Shown here in pieces: positions 1,975 through 44,785 of a DNA stretch of 64,000 nt. Both the position numbers and the translations under genes were made by a program. The first letter of the stretch is position 1. Each line of letters starts with the position of its first letter. The notes below the pieces were generated by a model. That model was not told the origin of the DNA. It made no database searches and saw only the letters and a program-made list of their open reading frames with translations. Source of the stretch: Prasinococcaceae sp. CCMP 1430 (lineage: Eukaryota; Plantae; Prasinodermophyta); the NCBI GenBank assembly GCA_013416795.1, contig RQSC01001240.1, positions 7,356 to 71,355 on the forward strand. The letters are read 5' to 3'.

Positions 1975-2359
1975 GTCTTTTGGCAGCAAGAAAGGGCCGG
2001 CGTGGTGCGAATGCATAACACTGTCCATTACGTCTACGCGAGTTCTGTCGCGAGTGGCTTGGATTGGCACCGCGATGGTGCTGCTTAGGATCGTTGTGTG
2101 TGTGTTGCATGGCTTAGGTGACTCGCTTTCGTGTCCGGTGGTGCGAGCGGACGCACGCGCGCGCGCGGCGCGGTCGCTCGTGTCGGCGGTGGCATGTGCT
2201 TAGCAGGTGGTGTCCCTGGCGGAGGAAGACAAAAAGCATCCTGGAAGGCCTGTCCATAGCTTGTCTAGTCGGGCCACTGAATGGAGATGCCTTCGTGGTG
2301 CTGACCTCACCACTGATGCCGCAGCAGAAGTGCGGGAGAGTGTACCTCTCTCGCTCTCC

Positions 2360-4383
2360 CTATGAGCGTGCGTTATGACTCGGATGATGGTACTGCGGCA
2401 CCAGGAAGGAGCCGCCCATCGAGCCTGGCATGTACACAGGCATTGCGTGCGGCACGCCACCGTTGGCGCGCGCCGCGGCCATCGCCACCGATGTGGCGCT
2501 CATATGAGGGGGCACATATGGCATGGTGGACGCGGTGGCTGTGCTCGACTTTACGCCGACGCCACTGGTCGCCTCTACGGTTGTCGGCCGCCCCGTGCCT
2601 GCATGCATGCCCGCAGAAGTCTCGTGGTGCACGGCGGCGCCATCAGCACAGCTACCAGCGTGCTTCTGGCGCGCGAGAGCGGCAGAGTGCTGCTGTCGCA
2701 TGTATGCCTGAGTGTGCGCATGCGCGTGCGCTGCGTGATGCACGGCGTGCTCGGCCATGGGTGACAGCTGCGGCGGAGGCGAGGATGAGAGGCGCACCGC
2801 CTCGGCGGTTTGCATGGCGACCGCCGCGTGCGTATCGATGCCCGCCATCGCCCCCGTCGACAGCACGCGCCCGCGGCCGGGCACGTAAAAGTGACGCTGC
2901 GCCGTGGTGCGCTGCATGTGGGCCATCGGCCCGCCGGTACCACCTCCGTATGCGGAGTTCAGCGGCATCGCGTGCGCGTGATGCGGGTACAGGTGGTACG
3001 CGTGTGGTGCGTACATCTGCGCCATCGCAAAAGCATGTGGGGGTGGGTATCCTCCCATGGCCATGGAGGGCGCAGCAACATCGAACTGGCGCGCGGCGAA
3101 GCGGTCGGCGAGCGCCCCCAGAAGTTCGGCGGCGCGCGGTGACACGCACTGAGTTGACACGCTCTCCGGGGCAGCGCTGCGCGCCTGGCGCTGCAGGCCG
3201 CTTGCGTCGCCACCGTCGCCGCCAACGGAGCTCATTGACCTGTCCGTAGCAGCATCAGGTCCCGCCACGACCACCGCTTCCATCGTGACCCCAGACGCAC
3301 GGTGGAAGCGCCAGAGCTTCTCCAGGCCGTATTCAAGGTCAAACTCATCGTTCAACCTCACGGCGAGGCGCTCGAAGTGGGCATAGAACGCGTCGCGACC
3401 GGCGGAAGAGCGCGAGCACGCGGTATAGAGGAAACGAATGACCCAAGTAGCGCCATGATCGGGGCGCACGTCGCCGCTGCCGCTCGTGAGGATGTGCTGC
3501 CTCGCGAGACCCCCGTGCTGCGCCCGCTGCGCCTGCTGTGCCTTGCCCGTCTGGGCATCGGCCAGAGCCTCACGGACGAACTCGTCAAAGGCGCCTTCGA
3601 GCTGCGGGTGCATGAGGAGCAGATTGGCCCAGAACTGGTAGAGATTGAGCTTTGTAAGCGCGCGGCGCCCATGACGCGACGAGGAGGATGTTGACGGCGC
3701 CTCGGCGGCGATGGGGCCGCCGCGCTCCCACCGCGGCGCGGAAGATGCCGCCGGGCACGAAGGCGGCGACTGGGGTGCCTCGGGCGACGCGCTTCCGTCC
3801 GATGCGCTGTCACCGCGCTCCGAGCCTCGGTGGCTGTTCGCGCGGGGGCTGCGAGCATGGCCCGTGGCGACGGCCGCGGCGCCACGCTGCGCGCCCGCCT
3901 TGCACGCGGCGACGAAGGCACAGTAGACGGTATAGTCCTCCGTGGCAGCTTCGGTGGGGAGGCGATCGCCCGGCGCGCGCACACGTTCCAAGGCGGGCGC
4001 GAGCGCCGCTGCCGCCCGGCGGGTGAACAGGCAGGCGACCTGCTTCGGAGGCGAGTAGCCTCCGATGCCCGCGCGGCGGGGCCCGGCGCCGCCGTTGCTT
4101 CTCAGGCCGCCGAGCGTCGCTTCCGTGATGGGGGACGCCGCGTGAGACGCCGCGGGCGCGGATGCGGGGCGGGGGCGTGCCTCATGCGGGACAGGAGATA
4201 GAGAGGGCGAAGGGGATGCGAATGGCGAGGCGGCGTTGGGGCTTGACTCGCCACCCGTGCGCTCCGCGACCCGCGGCGGTGCGGGCGTGACGACTCTTGG
4301 CTTGGCCTCCAACACGTCGCCGCCGCGCACCTCCCCCTCGCCGCCCTCGCTGCCCGCCGCATTCGCAAATGTCCGAGTCCTCC
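2360..4383 (-). CDS. DM15 (LARP1-type cap/TOP-binding) domain protein, 3' exon; 5' end runs into the N gap
   Basis: LNLYQFWANLLLMHPQLEGAFDEFVREALADAQ and FYAHFERLAVRLNDEFDLEYGLEKLWRFH match LARP1 DM15 repeats (LFRFWSFFL...YEEFKQLALEDA; YGLEKFWAF). Candidate intron 4748 (AAG|GTGCGG) to 4384 (CTGCAG|) joins in frame to AGGRGGGAK. No La motif is visible. Confidence 0.8.
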
Positions 4384-38619: not shown

Positions 38620-39048
38620 CACGATGGAGGCGAGGCGTGTCCGAACCTCGCCATGCCGTCGACAGTGACAAGCAAGGCGAGGACCCCAACTGCGCCGAGC
38701 TTGCCGTGAAGGCCTGCCAAGCTCTTCCGCGACTAGAAGATAGCCCGCTTCACAAGACGACGTTTCAGGGAGATCGTAAGATCGATGCAGCACCGTGGCC
38801 GAGCTCAAAGCCTTTGGTCTTGTCGTAGGCGCGTCGGGTGAAGCCAACGTGCCAGCCTTGCGCGCCTTCAAGGGCACGGTAGAAGTTGGCACACTGTCTA
38901 GGCTCCCACGCACGCGCGTCGGCATGCAAACTTGCGCGCGCGCATTTGTGTGCCTTTGCTTTCGCGTACGAAGCAGTTGTTCACCCTGTTCAGTAAGTAG
39001 TTCTTCTTCGAAGGGTGCGATAACAGTGCGATTAAAATCTTCGTATTT

Positions 39049-40900
39049 TTATAGTCCACAATTCCATATCAATTTGCACTCAACGCGCTTTGCTCGGGTT
39101 GCGCCCGACCTGGCACGCCGCTCCGCAGGCGGATGTGCGCGCGGGTCCGCATGCCAAGCAGGTCCGGCTCCGGCGCCTCCGGCGCCTCTTGCGCCTCGGG
39201 GACGCCCGGCCGGTCGGGCACCCGCACGCCCGGCCGCTCCGGCCGCTCCGGAGATGCCTGCTGCAGAGTGGCACGAGGGAGCGTGTGGGGCGTCCGGAGA
39301 GACGAGCGTCGACTGAAGCCCGAAGCGACGACACCAGGCCATGCAGTAGCCGCGCTCTGTGGTGCGAGGCATGAGCAGGTCTTGTGGGGAGCCGAAGCGG
39401 TCTCTGTAGATGGGGTGCGCGAACGTGCGATGCATCTCGTTGTCCTTGTGCAAGACGGAGTCGAGGCGAACGCGGTCCTCCGTTGTAACGGTTGAGAGGG
39501 TGAGGAGCTCGTTCTTGATGAGTCCGTCGACGGCCTTCTGCAGGGTGTCCACACGCTGGCGTTCGACACCCTGGGCCGTGCGCACAGGTCCACCAAGGGG
39601 GACATCCGTCACCTCTTCACCAACCGGGTCAAGCAGGCGGACCCAAGCCGCTGGCCGACGGGCAAGGTCTTTCGGGTCCTTGCCGACGGCCTGCACAGTT
39701 CATCGTCGGCATGCGTTCTCCGCGCGTGCGGCGTGCACACACACGACCGCCCCAGGCGCCGCTCTCGCGGCAGCGCTGCGGGCGGATAGCTAGCTTTCAC
39801 TCATGCCCTTACTTCTTAGACACACGCGCGCTACGCAACCTCGCGCTTGCGTCTTCTCGTACTGTAATCGCAACCTTTGCAGCAGCAGGGTGTTCTGGCA
39901 GACGGCAGCCGGGATTGACATGGAAGCTGGGTCGGCATTGGCGGGAAACGGTGGAGCCAAGGTCTCGTTGTCGGTGTTGATCATGGTGTGCAGGGCCTCG
40001 TACAGGGCAGCGCCCGCGGTGTCGGGGTGGGTGAAGTACTGCCAAGCGAGGGGGTGGCGTGTGGCGAAGGGAAGGACGGAAGTCCTCGCACCAACCCACG
40101 CCGGCAGGCGAACGGTGGAAGGGGCGCGCATACCGAACCCACCCTGGGAGATGGGAAGCCCGATGTGCTTCGGGAAGATCTTCGCCAGCGACCCAGTGCG
40201 GGTCGGAGTGTCGTCTGGCGGGACCTTGCCGAGTGCGCAATCCACCGTGGCCTGGAGCAGGGCGTGGTGACGCTTCACGAGGAAGTGTGTTGGCTCAGCG
40301 TACCTGTCCTGTTCGCCCTTGCCGCCCGGGAAGAGGCCGCGCAGGAGGTAGTCGCTGATGGGGTGGACACACGTGCGGAGTACCTTGAGCGCTGCGCTGT
40401 GGTGCCCCCACGCGGAGAACTGGTTGCAGGCGGTGAGCTTGCGATAGTACACCGCGTCCTTCTTCTCGAGAGCCCCTGCCACGAAGTCCTTGGTGCCGAG
40501 CGGGAAGCCCACGACGACGACGCCTTCAACCGCCCCTGGCGCGCAGCCAGCGGTGGAGGTGCGGGGGTCGGGGGGAAGGGAGTCGAGGTAGGCGACCACC
40601 GCCTTGCCGTCGCCCACGGTGAGCAGAGCCGCATCGAGGACGCAGTTGACGTCGGCGATCTTGTTGAAGAGGTCGTGGCCGAGCGCCTCCTTGCGAGCAG
40701 CGGTGAGCCTGTCAGGGTGGACGTGCATGCGCAGCTTGCGCTGCTGGGACTTGGCGAGCGCGACCACTTTGGCGGCGCGTCCACTCGCCCCGTTGACAGA
40801 CGCGATGCCGGCGCGAAGGCCCCTCGGAGCGATGTGTAAGCAGCGAAGAGCCGACGGCACGTCCTTGCAGCGCTGCTGCTCGAAGCGTTGCTGACTGCCT
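39049..40900 (-). mobile_element. Retrotransposon ORF segment (J-domain, RT thumb, linker), interrupted by an antisense copy at 39549-39884
   Basis: EGVVVVGFPLGTKDFV, ALKVLRTCVHPISDYLLR and LPISQGGFGMR are typical post-RT motifs of CRE-like elements. Removing the insert and one TSD copy (345 bp) restores the frame: VCQNTLQKAVDGLIKNELL...EDRVRLDS. Confidence 0.85.
39549..39885 (+). mobile_element. 5'-truncated copy (end of RLE + 3' UTR) flanked by 9-bp TSD GCAGGGTGT
   Basis: TSD at 39540-39548 and 39885-39893. The insert is nearly identical to 42172-42480. Confidence 0.9.
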
Positions 40901-40959
40901 TGCGAGCCAGGGGCTTTGCCGCGAGGCCCGAGGGCCCGCTCCCCCGAGGGGGCGGGTCG

Positions 40960-41203
40960 CGTCTCCCACGGCCCCCCAGGCTCGTGCCGCTGCCCGGTCT
41001 GCCGCGAGACCAAGGCATCTGCCAAGGAGCTCCGGGACCACTGGACCGCCAAGTGCGAGCCGGTCGGCGCCCCGCCCGCAGGCTGGAAGAAGGGCGACCC
41101 GGTACCCACACGCCTCCTGCCAGACTTGGCCACGGCCTGGCGCGACCATCCGGTCTGCCGGCTCACCCAGGCTGAGAAGGAGTCTATGGGCGCTCACCAC
41201 CAG
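40960..41203 (+). CDS. C2HC zinc-finger segment, probably the inverted N-terminal part of the same element
   Basis: CPVC-x12-HWTAKC at 40991-41056. N-terminal zinc fingers are typical of RLE elements, but assignment to this element is inference. Confidence 0.5.
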
Positions 41204-41916
41204 TGCTGCAAAGGGTGCGATTACAGTACGAGAAGACGCAAGCGCGAGGTTGCGTAGCGCGCGTGTGTCTAAGAAGTAAGGGCAGGAGTGAAAGCTAGCT
41301 ATCCGCCCGCAGCGCTGCCGCGAGAGCGGCGCCTGGGGCGGTCGTGTGTGTGCACGCCGCACGCGCGGAGAACGCATGCCGACGATGAACTGTGCAGGCC
41401 GTCGGCAAGGACCCGAAAGACCTTGCCCGTCGGCCAGCGGCTTGGGTCCGCCTGCGTGACCCGGTTGGTGAAGAGGTGGCGGATGTCCCCCCTGGTGGAC
41501 CTGTGTGCACGGCCCAGGGTGTCGAACGCTAGCGTGTGGAACTGGATGCGGTGGTGCTCGCAGATCTTCGCGTAGCGCTGGACGTGGACCTTGTAGAGGT
41601 GCTCCAGGCCTGCCGCCGTGGACGGGTTCGCGCCTGCCATGTTGACCTTGGCTGACGGATCCGTGAAGGTGACGTCGAGGCAGTGTCTGTAGCCTGTGTC
41701 GGTGTCGGTGATGACTAGGTCCGAGCGCAGGTCAGTGGGCTGGCCATTTTCGTCAGTACCGAACGAGTACTCGAACGAGTTGGTGGAGCTGGGGCCGTTG
41801 GTGTGCACGTGGTAGCCGGTGCGGCGAGCGACCTTCGCGAAGTTGCGCACGAGGCGGTTGTGGCGGTAGGTGCGCTCCCCTGCTGTCGACAAGCAGACCG
41901 TGGCGTGGGCGCCGTT
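41204..41916 (-). mobile_element. 5'-truncated copy encoding the complete restriction-like endonuclease domain plus 3' UTR
   Basis: HATVC...RTYRHNRL (end of CCHC, RHN), LRSDLVI (RxD), LDVTFT (D), YKVHVQRY (K), LAFDTLG; stop TAG, then ~100-nt 3' UTR. Confidence 0.9.
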
Positions 41917-43015
41917 TCGTACTGTAATCGCACCCTTTGCAGCTTGCGTCTTCTCGTACTGTAATCGCACCCTTTGCAGCTGCTGCAAAGGGTGCGATTA
42001 CACTCATGCCCTTACTTCTTAGACACACGCGCGCTACGCAACCTCGCGCTTGCGTCTTCTCGTATTGTAACATGGCAGGCGCGAACCCGTCCACGGCGGC
42101 AGGCCTGGAGCACCTCTACAAGGTCCACGTCCAGCGCTACGCGAAGATCTGCGAGCACCACCGCATCCAGTTCCACACGCTAGCGTTCGACACCCTGGGC
42201 CGTGCACACAGGTCCACCAGGGGGGACATCCGCCACCTCTTCACCAACCGGGTCACGCAGGCGGACCCAAGCCGCTGGCCGACGGGCAAGGTCTTTCGGG
42301 TCCTTGCCGACGGCCTGCACAGTTCATCGTCGGCATGCGTTCTCCGCGCGTGCGGCGTGCACACACACGACCGCCCCAGGCGCCGCTCTCGCGGCAGCGC
42401 TGCGGGCGGATAGCTAGCTTTCACTCATGCCCTTACTTCTTAGACACACGCGCGCTACGCAACCTCGCGCTTGCGTCTTCTCGTAACCGCGCGTGCGGCG
42501 TGCACACACACGATCGCCCCAGGCGCCGCTCTCGCGGCAGCGCTGCGGGCGGATAGCTAGCTTTCACTCCTGCCCTTACTTCTTAGACACACGCGCGCTA
42601 CGCAACCTCGCGCTTGCGTCTTCTCGTACTGTAATCGCACCCTTTGCAGCGTATTGTAATCGCACCCTTTGCAGCAGTACGAGAAGACGCAAGCGCGAGG
42701 TTGCGTAGCGCGCGTGTGTCTAAGAAGTAAGGGCATGAGTGAAAGCTAGCTATCCGCCCGCAGCGCTGCCGCGAGAGCGGCGCCTGGGGCGGTCGTGTGT
42801 GTGCACGCCGCACGCGCGGAGAACGCATGCCGGCGTACATGCGACATGCGGCCCTTGGAAGCTCGTGCCAGGGCGCGAAAGGACGCTAGGGGGTCGCACT
42901 GGGAGCACGGAAGATCTACAGCGGCATCCCTTGCGGGATGCGGCGAGTCTTACGGCACGCGGGGGACGCGGTATGTTCAGGGCGTTCGGGGAGCGCCTGC
43001 CAGCAGACTATAGCC

Positions 43016-44785
43016 TCACTGTGCTCTAGCGGAGTACGCCGAGAGGTCGGAAGGGGGCGCCGACCACTTGACTCCTTCGGCGCGTTCCACGATTCGACCG
43101 ACATCGAGCAGCATGGCACCCTGGACCTGACCGAATGGAACCCCGGGTGTTTTGACCACGCTGCACTTGACCTTCACAATCACGCCAAAAGGTCCACTTA
43201 GGTCGGTCGCAGCGCACCAGGGCATCTCGCTCACGCTCCATGGGGTTTGGATGACTTCCTTGTGTGCTCGCAGATACGCAAGGATGTCGTCACACAGGCG
43301 CTCGACGTGATCCATCGACTCCACATCGAGGCAGATCTCGTGCTCGAAGAAGCGATTGCGCGCGGCGGTGATGTTCTTGATGCCCCCTGGGTTGTTCAGG
43401 AGTACGTGGTTCGCAATCGTGTGCGGGGTCTTGGACACGCCCGTCCTAGTGAGCAAGGTGGTGCTGGACGCTCCGATGCCGATGACGGTGCCGTGAATGT
43501 CCTTGCCGACGTGGATAGTGTCACCGACCTGGAAGATCGGGCGCGTCAGAAGAGCGATGCCAGCGATGACGTCGGCGACTGCATCTTTCACGCCAAAGGA
43601 CAGCGCCACGCCGCCGATGCCGAGGAGACCCTGTCACATGCCGCGGCGACAAAGGCGGTGCAGGGAGTTTCGCTCCCGTCAGCGCCCTCGCTGCGTTCAT
43701 TGCTGATGTCAAACCCTAACCCTAAACATGCAATTCAATACTGCGAGCATGGACATCTGTCCATCTACGCACGTGCGATGCAAGGAGGCGCCAGGCTCTT
43801 AGACGCACCCAAACAGTGCTGAGGGCAATGCCCATAGAGTTGAGAAAAACAATGGTTCCGACACAGCTCACCACTGCCTGGATGACGTTGCAATTCCTGC
43901 GAAGTAGGCGCCTGCGTCAGGACGCGCGAGGTCGAACGCAACAGCTTGCGGCACCATGATGCTGCTAGCTACCACAGCAAATGCGGAACGCTGGTGCCGA
44001 TCAACTCACGTAGAAATCCGCGGTTCCAACTTGCGCGCTTCACCTCCAACGACGGCACAGGCCGCCAGCAAGCGCCTGCGGACCCTCTTGACGACTCTCC
44101 TGGCAAACCAGGCGCATGCCACGACGTACACCGGCCAGGGAAGCTGGAAGTTGGAGACGAAGCATCCCTTCGTGCCGATGAGCGTCACGTGCAAGGTCTT
44201 CGACATCCCCGTCGCCATGAGCAGGCGCGTGAGCTCGTTGGCCACGACCAGCAGCTGAAGGGGGCCAGAGAGCGCCGCTGCGACGCTTTGGTCGTATGTG
44301 TAGCTCTCGCGAGCTCTCGTTTTGATCTTGTCCGCGAGCCGCCTGTCCGCAGAGCTGAACGCGCGCACGGGGAGGAAGTGGCCGATGAAGTCGGTGTGGA
44401 AGACGCGCTCCTGCATGTGCCAAAAGAGTCGGCAGGCACGCGGGATGGCCAAGAAGATGACAGCGCCAACGAGGGTAGGCACTAGCACCTCAGCGTGGAA
44501 TTTGGCCTCGGTCAGCCCAACGGCGCTGCGAGCATATTCAAGCGCCGCGCCGAGAAAGGTAGGCGGGGCGATCGCCTTTGCTGCCAACAGCGCGGGGCTA
44601 CTCCGACCGCGAGCATCGGTACTAGGCGTGGCATGAGCATCGTCGTCGCTTCCCGGCACACCAGAGGAGGCCTCACAGCGACGCACACCCCTCGCCTTGG
44701 CAAATTTTCGCTTGCCTCTCCGCCGCGGCCTGCGGCTGTTGTGACCCGCCGCTGCCCCTAGCGGTGCCATCGCCGCAGCAGCCAT
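43016..44785 (-). CDS. MscS-like mechanosensitive channel, multi-exon, probable organellar transit peptide
   Basis: GLLGIGGVALSFGVKDAVADVIAGI...PIFQVGDTI...GTVIGIG...TTL...IANH (TM3 and beta domain). Ala/Arg-rich N-terminus from ATG 44785. Internal exons between ~43640 and 44046 are not resolved. Confidence 0.85.

Follow-up and report, generated by a model that had tools for sequence, protein, structure and literature searches.

A nested pile-up of truncated retrotransposon copies in an intergenic region of the alga Prasinococcaceae sp. CCMP 1430 and its probable origin by repeated insertion near the element's own 3' end

In a 64,000-nt stretch of the genome of Prasinococcaceae sp. CCMP 1430 (contig RQSC01001240.1, positions 7,356 to 71,355; assembly GCA_013416795.1), referred to below as the window, a 3.8-kb intergenic gap of this GC-rich marine alga holds at least eight separate insertions of one retrotransposon. 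Judged from its sequence and from a structure model, the element is a non-LTR (long terminal repeat) retrotransposon with a restriction-like endonuclease (RLE). The inserted pieces range in size from 22 nt to 1.66 kb and are mostly severely 5'-truncated. Their breakpoints lie mostly between about 22 nt inside the terminus of the element and about 15 nt past it, in both orientations. It appears fairly probable that a young RLE family was inserted here repeatedly by target-primed reverse transcription, and that its own 3' end, present as DNA, attracted later copies. The tendency to home to this tail is marked but non-exclusive, and it looks real.

The extent of the pile-up is indicated by the terminal sequence of the element. 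Six matches to the 26-mer terminus CGTACTGTAATCGCACCCTTTGCAGC, with one mismatch at most, are present in the window and span positions 39858-42675, while none is expected from 100 dinucleotide-preserving shuffles. Repeat comparison within the window linked 39548-42835 by families of direct and inverted repeats, and self-BLAST detected no copy of the family in the 64-kb window outside this cluster, which is flanked by single-copy genes. No unrelated transposon is present in the cluster, only the family and a relative sharing a terminal 13-mer with it. A preliminary description had reported about nine 3' ends of such an element in 39011-42832. The terminus count and the segment map confirm the pile-up with small corrections of coordinates, and the four insertion points named there (41943/4, 41980/1, 42002/3 and 42070/1) are all real. 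Three further junctions were recognised at 42485/6, 42650/1 and 42675/6.

For comparison, loci on Tara Oceans scaffolds (L001 and others), each sampled around one known copy of the family, were aligned with the pieces in the window. Two minus-strand pieces, M0a (39885-40908), containing a J-domain-like HPD segment and the thumb of the reverse transcriptase (RT), and M0b (39253-39548), the linker between the RT thumb and CCHC/RLE, do not represent a 3' end. They are contiguous across the M0a-M0b joint in L003 (8216-8629) and L001 (10000-10191) and therefore form one longer internal copy, M0. At its upstream side M0 is 5'-truncated at about 40908, where contigs of other copies continue, and at its downstream side it breaks at an element position designated c (39252/39253), through which contigs of other copies read. 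M0 is interrupted by S1 (39549-39884, plus strand), a 336-nt 5'-truncated copy located in the coding region of M0 in opposite orientation. S1 is flanked by the duplication GCAGGGTGT at 39540-39548 and 39885-39893, which shrinks to 5 nt (GGTGT) if the tail is taken as GCAGCAGCAG. The joint 39539 to 39885, with nine shared letters, was detected in contigs of two organisms and corresponds to an empty S1 site in other copies.

Upstream of M0, positions 40909-41204 are single-copy host DNA, a further correction of the preliminary description. Contigs 40959-41131 and 41103-41232 match this island with no mismatches and at near single-copy depth (runs X1 and X5). Beyond the island follows S3 (41205-41916, minus strand), a 712-nt piece with CCHC motif, RLE, 3' untranslated region (UTR) and complete terminus, whose 5' end is exactly at c.

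The remaining pieces form a nest built around a minus-strand copy, M1. The final 22 nt of M1 are S6 (41981-42002) and its 5' part of about 160 nt is S11 (42676 to about 42835), which lacks the last 20 nt and meets host DNA at about 42832-42835. The end of S11 (...CGTACT) and the start of S6 (TGTAATC...) join as one copy with an overlap of 0-2 nt, and the block between them, 42003-42675, is inserted in M1, 21 nt from its end, in opposite orientation. The outer pieces of this block, all on the plus strand, are S7 (42003-42070), which ends with ...GTATTGTAA 16 nt before the end of the terminus, and S10 (42651-42675). A rare GTATTG variant and the 9-nt overlap GTATTGTAA are common to both; S7 is the body and S10 the last 25 nt of one copy of about 90 nt, P0. 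Enclosed by them are S8 (42071-42485), a 415-nt body without its own tail that ends 22 nt before the end of the terminus and is followed by an extra A at 42486, and S9 (42487-42650), 164 nt long with its own complete tail, a private T variant, GTA on both sides and the extra A at its 5' junction. Two short terminal fragments on the plus strand precede S6, at the end of the M1 tail: S4 (41917-41943, 27 nt) and S5 (41944-41980, 37 nt), which lies head-to-tail behind S4 and tail-to-tail with S6.

Two properties of these pieces support the view that they are separate nested insertions, as had been proposed. First, inner pieces possess target-site duplications of their own: GCAGGGTGT for S1, GTATTGTAA for S8 and GTA for S9. 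Second, they differ in variant markers. At the position 84 nt before the end, S1, S7, S8 and S11 have A, and S3 and S9 have C; GCAACC occurs in S1 alone. At least four to five source sequences can be distinguished in this way, and since adjoining pieces carry different markers (S8 and S9, for example), they were derived from different source copies. The pile-up is best read as at least eight separate target-primed insertions and not as one duplication, with M0 and S3 counting as one event if they came from a single RNA. A plausible order would begin with M1, followed by P0 into M1, S8 into the P0 tail and S9 into the same tail; S4 and S5 would then have been placed at the end of the M1 tail, M0 and S3 would have arrived next, and S1 would have entered M0 last. 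The pieces of 20-40 nt were also considered as templated insertions of the polymerase-theta type. This explanation was rejected, since all short pieces end at the true terminus with their own tail variant and not in arbitrary local sequence.

The distribution of insertion points was evaluated for 13 insertions delimited by duplications. About 12% of the sampled family DNA lies in zones no more than 25 nt from a terminus, but eight of the 13 insertions are located there, within 25 nt of the terminus of an older copy (binomial P about 3e-5). At least 25 further pieces were found at the sampled loci, none of them more than about 1.5 kb away from the index copy. Their density far exceeds any plausible random density, for which the genome-wide figure uses an assumed genome size.

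Similar arrangements recur at other loci. In L006, a 38-nt terminal fragment lies inside the tail of another copy and is flanked by an 8-bp duplication, CCCTTAGC. In L005, copy Y starts exactly at the junction between the tail of copy X and its flank, with TGCCT on both sides. In L003, the RLE coding sequence of another copy is interrupted by two micro-inserts (47 and 15 nt) with the duplications GGTG and GGTGTCG; their order, GGTGTCG-B-GGTG-A-GGTGTCG, implies that A was inserted later than B, at the end of the B tail. Two fragments share one internal site of a host copy in L002 (duplications of 7 and 12-13 bp), one fragment is contained within an older copy in L001, and in L008 the (CAG)n tail of one fragment is succeeded by another fragment.

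Comparisons of orthologous regions revealed differences between strains. L005 and L009 are 94.4% identical over 3.9 kb, yet only L005 contains, 17 bp beyond the end of a copy, a terminal fragment of 25 nt that has a duplication of its own; this implies events separated in time. The region of a gene for an MscS-like protein is about 98% identical between the window and L004 over 3.6 kb, but the sets of fragments are entirely different. A 590-nt family copy at L004 841-1434, whose tail is TTAGCAGCAGCAG and whose duplication measures about 5 bp, fills a site for which the window, near 43010, has the empty form (gcagactata|gcctcactg, 43000-43020), and upstream of the filled site the two haplotypes are unrelated. 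L002 and L003 share a flanking gene and contain different mosaics. These differences suggest that the family was recently, or is currently, active in ocean populations. Single-copy flanks are covered about 150x; compared with this, the summed depth of contigs points to a few tens of 3' ends in the genome, a value that is not a copy number; accordingly, the gap analysed here may hold a sizeable share of them.

The preliminary description had gone further in naming the element's own sequence, especially the 3' terminus, as its preferred target. The preference is upheld by the enrichment at termini and by its recurrence at other loci, but exclusivity is not, and a number of observations weigh against attraction to the tail. 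Five of the 13 delimited insertions occupy internal sites of copies, far from the terminus. Solo insertions exist: copy 2 of L004 occupies a site left unfilled in the window, and the loose ends of contigs include four or more unrelated flanks. The 13 cleavage sites have no motif in common, leaving recognition by the endonuclease unsupported. Moreover, the loci were chosen around known copies and do not provide genome-wide frequencies. Internal segments are joined in non-collinear or inverted fashion in L008 (1973-2742), L010 (2414-3374) and L011 (590-986), mosaics which imply that the RT switches templates, so that some junctions in the window might be composite events as well. Read evidence consists of short Logan contigs, which cover the host junctions and the empty S1 site and not the internal order of the nest. 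Finally, in-register priming, discussed below, is supported by the junction S7|S8..S10 as the sole example.

A single conserved host target cut at a fixed position was not found either; the flanks of solo copies are mutually unrelated. The possibility that the terminal 21-26 nt represent a host target carried along by the element, for instance from spliced leader or small nuclear RNA (snRNA) genes, was rejected, since solo copies with unrelated flanks possess the terminus and empty sites do not.

How a family could find its own tails may be envisaged as follows. The ribonucleoprotein would locate old copies via their terminal sequence (...TGTAATCGCACCC and the GCAG-rich tail). Cleavage itself would occur with little sequence preference; GCAG or CAGCAG was noted 0-6 nt upstream of about five of the 13 cleavage sites, resembling the GCAG-rich tail of the element. 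The 3' end of the RNA would pair with the nicked old tail, probably as at least a part of target finding, and many insertion attempts would abort after 20-40 nt. In the case of S8, the RNA would have paired in register with the nicked P0 tail, the top strand would have been cut 9 nt downstream, and the new body would have made use of the old tail. A body lacking its own tail between S7 and S10 is what in-register priming on the P0 tail would leave, and on the letters of this junction it is suggested that RNA-DNA pairing may help to choose the target. As a general rule for the family, this is put forward tentatively and with considerable doubt: targeting might be guided by nucleic-acid pairing, the RNA 3' end and DNA of the same sequence bringing a weakly specific RLE to a nearby nick, sometimes with in-register priming and without a dedicated protein-DNA code.

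Another explanation would require only a few composite events of target-primed reverse transcription, in which the RT changed from one RNA template to another and used two or more nicks for priming, so that a sloppy polymerase and not the choice of target created the pile-up. The mosaics of L008, L010 and L011 fit such behavior; four distinct breakpoints connect the J-domain region with the RLE region in their copies, suggesting from sequence comparison that template switching or deletion may be frequent in the family. S8, without its own tail, and the extra A at 42486 would also be expected. A further case is presented by M0 and S3. M0 stops at 39252/3 and S3 starts at 41916/7, and in the element both breakpoints fall exactly on position c (...GGCGCCGTT|GATGCC...). 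A stretch of 296 bp of host DNA lies between the pieces, and no break at c was observed in any other locus compared. Two nicks in the same strand could have served one RNA, the first priming synthesis at its 3' end and the second at an internal position. In twin priming of L1, two complementary DNAs (cDNAs) of one RNA meet at a common internal breakpoint. M0 and S3 might be a same-strand analogue of this process, a single RNA primed at two nicks; they differ from the L1 case in having the same orientation and in being separated by 296 bp of host DNA, which points to two nicks on the same strand instead of one per strand. For the pile-up as a whole, however, composite events are unlikely. The surrounding sequence is duplicated on both sides of inner pieces, an outcome that template jumping does not give, neighbouring pieces belong to different subfamilies, and the fragment present in L005 and absent from L009 records an event separate in time. 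Inverted pieces would require a further mechanism.

Clusters could also arise without any recognition of the element if a target site is reused or a region is a permissive hot spot. In double insertion, which has been described for elements including R1 and P, the tandem junction contains a copy of the target duplication (McGurk and Barbash 2018, PMC5932611). The duplication regenerates the target in such a process, and the arrangements of L005 (X/TGCCT/Y/TGCCT) and L003 (B/GGTG/A/GGTGTCG), in which a duplicate of the flank is kept between tandem elements (GGTG within GGTGTCG in L003), correspond to it. A new copy exactly at the junction of old tail and flank, with the flank duplication in between, is a case of this known mechanism (PMC5932611). 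Tandems in which a tail is followed by an internal, 5'-truncated start, with a duplication in the junction, are likewise shared with R1 arrays, jockey and others (PMC5932611). Moreover, the window and L004 acquired independent insertions at different positions of the intergenic region upstream of the MscS-like gene. On the other hand, the insertions at M1|P0, S7|S8, S8|S9 and in L006 occurred in the 25 nt that terminate the old copy and not in regenerated flank, so that double insertion leaves them unaccounted for. The delimited targets offer no common motif to regenerate, and in the window only the family and its relative accumulated, with no unrelated transposon. Compared to double-insertion tandems (PMC5932611), there are many insertions in the last 25 nt of old copies in both orientations, fragments down to 15-40 nt, and at least eight events at one locus. 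Site reuse as the general explanation is thus considered improbable.

That the nest results from a mis-joined or collapsed repeat in the assembly, or from slippage or unequal exchange between short repeats at the DNA level, could be suspected from pieces that are 98-100% identical and from contigs that break inside repeats, but it is very improbable, since the nesting is self-consistent with split copies rejoining at duplications of 0-9 nt, adjacent pieces differ in markers, the junctions to host DNA at 41204/5 and about 42835 are supported by Logan contigs of two organisms, and the same kinds of structure occur in independent Tara scaffolds. Contigs across 42803-43200 showed no mismatches (runs X1 and X5).

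Attraction of new copies to the family's own 3' ends, the explanation favoured here, has partial counterparts among known elements. HeT-A and TART, the RLE-bearing MoTeR elements of Magnaporthe, GilM and GilT of Giardia and the Zepp clusters of Chlorella form head-to-tail arrays by successive insertion beside earlier copies, and for telomeric or terminal-array elements priming is probably aided when the 3' end of the RNA pairs with its target. In contrast to telomeric arrays and Zepp, the arrays described here are located between ordinary genes and not at chromosome ends, and inverted and nested pieces are common. No arrays at chromosome ends or telomeric repeats were found; the sole trace is a stretch of short TTAGGG-like repeats, direct and inverted, at L003 7900-7970, which directly adjoins the truncated end of a copy. 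The pile-up is an extension of known array-building and double-insertion behavior. A safe-harbour benefit of such arrays, as had been suggested, might exist.

RLE elements such as R2 are model systems for target-primed reverse transcription and are also under study as tools for inserting genes at safe-harbour sites; their targeting is normally ascribed to protein-DNA recognition of a host gene. An element that seeks out the terminal 25 nt of its own copies, cleaves at loosely defined positions and has left one junction resembling in-register priming, would be a natural system for determining which share pairing of the RNA primer has in target choice. If the pairing interpretation were true, it would represent a natural, reprogrammable RNA-guided retrotransposition. 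An element homing to its own copies would also show how interstitial repeat arrays can be founded and enlarged in the intergenic space of a gene-dense algal genome.

Assignment of the element to the RLE-type non-LTR retrotransposons, as in the preliminary description, is supported by several lines of evidence. Relatives of the 205-aa open reading frame (ORF) of S3, which come only from Tara Oceans metagenome scaffolds, align with it in a CCHC motif (C..C..H..C) and in RHN, RSDLVITD, CLDVTFTD and AFDTLGR. Both this alignment and a structure model indicate a C-terminal PD-(D/E)xK RLE behind the CCHC motif. For the AlphaFold model, obtained from the alignment of the relatives, the mean predicted local distance difference test (pLDDT) score is 61; its top seven Foldseek matches are all R2 proteins (E 5e-4 to 4e-3), and VIA-align yielded Z scores of 8.5 and 8.2 to R2 C-terminal endonuclease regions, followed by archaeal Hjc resolvases (Z 7.7). 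Searches by sequence were less informative. No match was obtained in Pfam with the RLE and RT-C-terminal ORFs, nor in PDB sequence searches with the RLE ORF, M0 and P0037, a metagenomic protein of 839 aa, and BLASTP of the RLE ORF against the C-terminus of P0037 was not significant.

A non-LTR-type RT in the same ORF could be traced via overlapping metagenome fragments, the window holding only the part after RT motif 6. Residues 127-285 of the 341-aa piece encoded by 39886-40908 (minus strand) match the region following RVT_1 in P0037 (E 2e-14). P0031 (91% identity) and P0026 overlap the N-terminus of the M0 piece with 84-91% identity and reach upstream into RT motifs 4-6, and the N-terminus of P0031 matches RT motifs within the RVT_1 region of P0037 (E 1e-7). 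L012 carries the element 530 nt further upstream than M0. A search of 1.84 billion proteins revealed fragments and one distant 839-aa RT-RLE protein, but no full-length ORF, and the N-terminal DNA-binding part of the element was not recovered in it. Between RT motifs 6 and 7, a J-domain-like segment is present in the window (40560-40870, minus strand, HPDR) and in L008 (1990-2150, HPDK), which constitutes an insertion relative to the distant relative P0037.

Copies are 5'-truncated with one common 3' end and target-site duplications of variable length, and neither LTRs nor terminal inverted repeats are present. In these features, and in the order of RT, CCHC motif and C-terminal RLE, whose model is closest to that of R2, the element resembles R2, R4, CRE, NeSL, Utopia and HERO. 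As in R2 and other RLE lineages, poly(A) is missing, and the tail is a short GCAG-rich repeat. Differences to the R2-type lineages are the lack of a single host target such as ribosomal DNA, spliced-leader or snRNA genes or a microsatellite, the variable positions of cleavage, and the J-domain-like segment. Rfam searches of the whole window at the gathering threshold gave no match, hence no ribozyme or known RNA, the predicted fold of the last 126 nt was no better than that of shuffled sequences (z = -1.0), so that no terminal structure is claimed, and a pattern scan for the terminus in metagenomes of the Joint Genome Institute (JGI) yielded no matches. The M0 region 40022-40908 is 95-99% identical to contigs from a seawater metatranscriptome (X17) and from two possibly RNA runs. 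The family may thus be expressed in the sea, carry-over of DNA being a possible alternative.

At the downstream edge of M0, positions 39011-39252 (minus strand) call for another correction of the preliminary description. This segment, F2, carries the 3' tail of a second, related family and ends with ...AATCGCACTGTTATCGCACCCTTCGAAG; the same tail is present at L006 2260-2350. Only about 39011-39100 is common to L006, the remainder to 39252 being GC-rich, and a contig over 38800-39236 (from short Logan contigs) has single-copy depth. The second family (39011-39100 in the window) shares with the first only the terminal ...TGT(A/T)ATCGCACCCTT, that is ...AATCGCACTGT(A/T)ATCGCACCCTTCGAAG. Directly upstream of its tail in L006, an ORF of 236 aa (2352-3062, minus strand) has no Pfam match. 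The second family may be a partner using the same RT.

Two minor observations concern other sequences. In the orthologous loci L002 (5381-5400) and L003 (9338-9400), an element 3' end is located at the same flank, TTACT..GCGCGCGC, with differing 3' UTRs, which could be a third tail type or the result of a replacement. Within the single-copy island of the window, an ORF at 40916-41257 (plus strand) shows a weak match to C2H2 zinc fingers (E 0.056).

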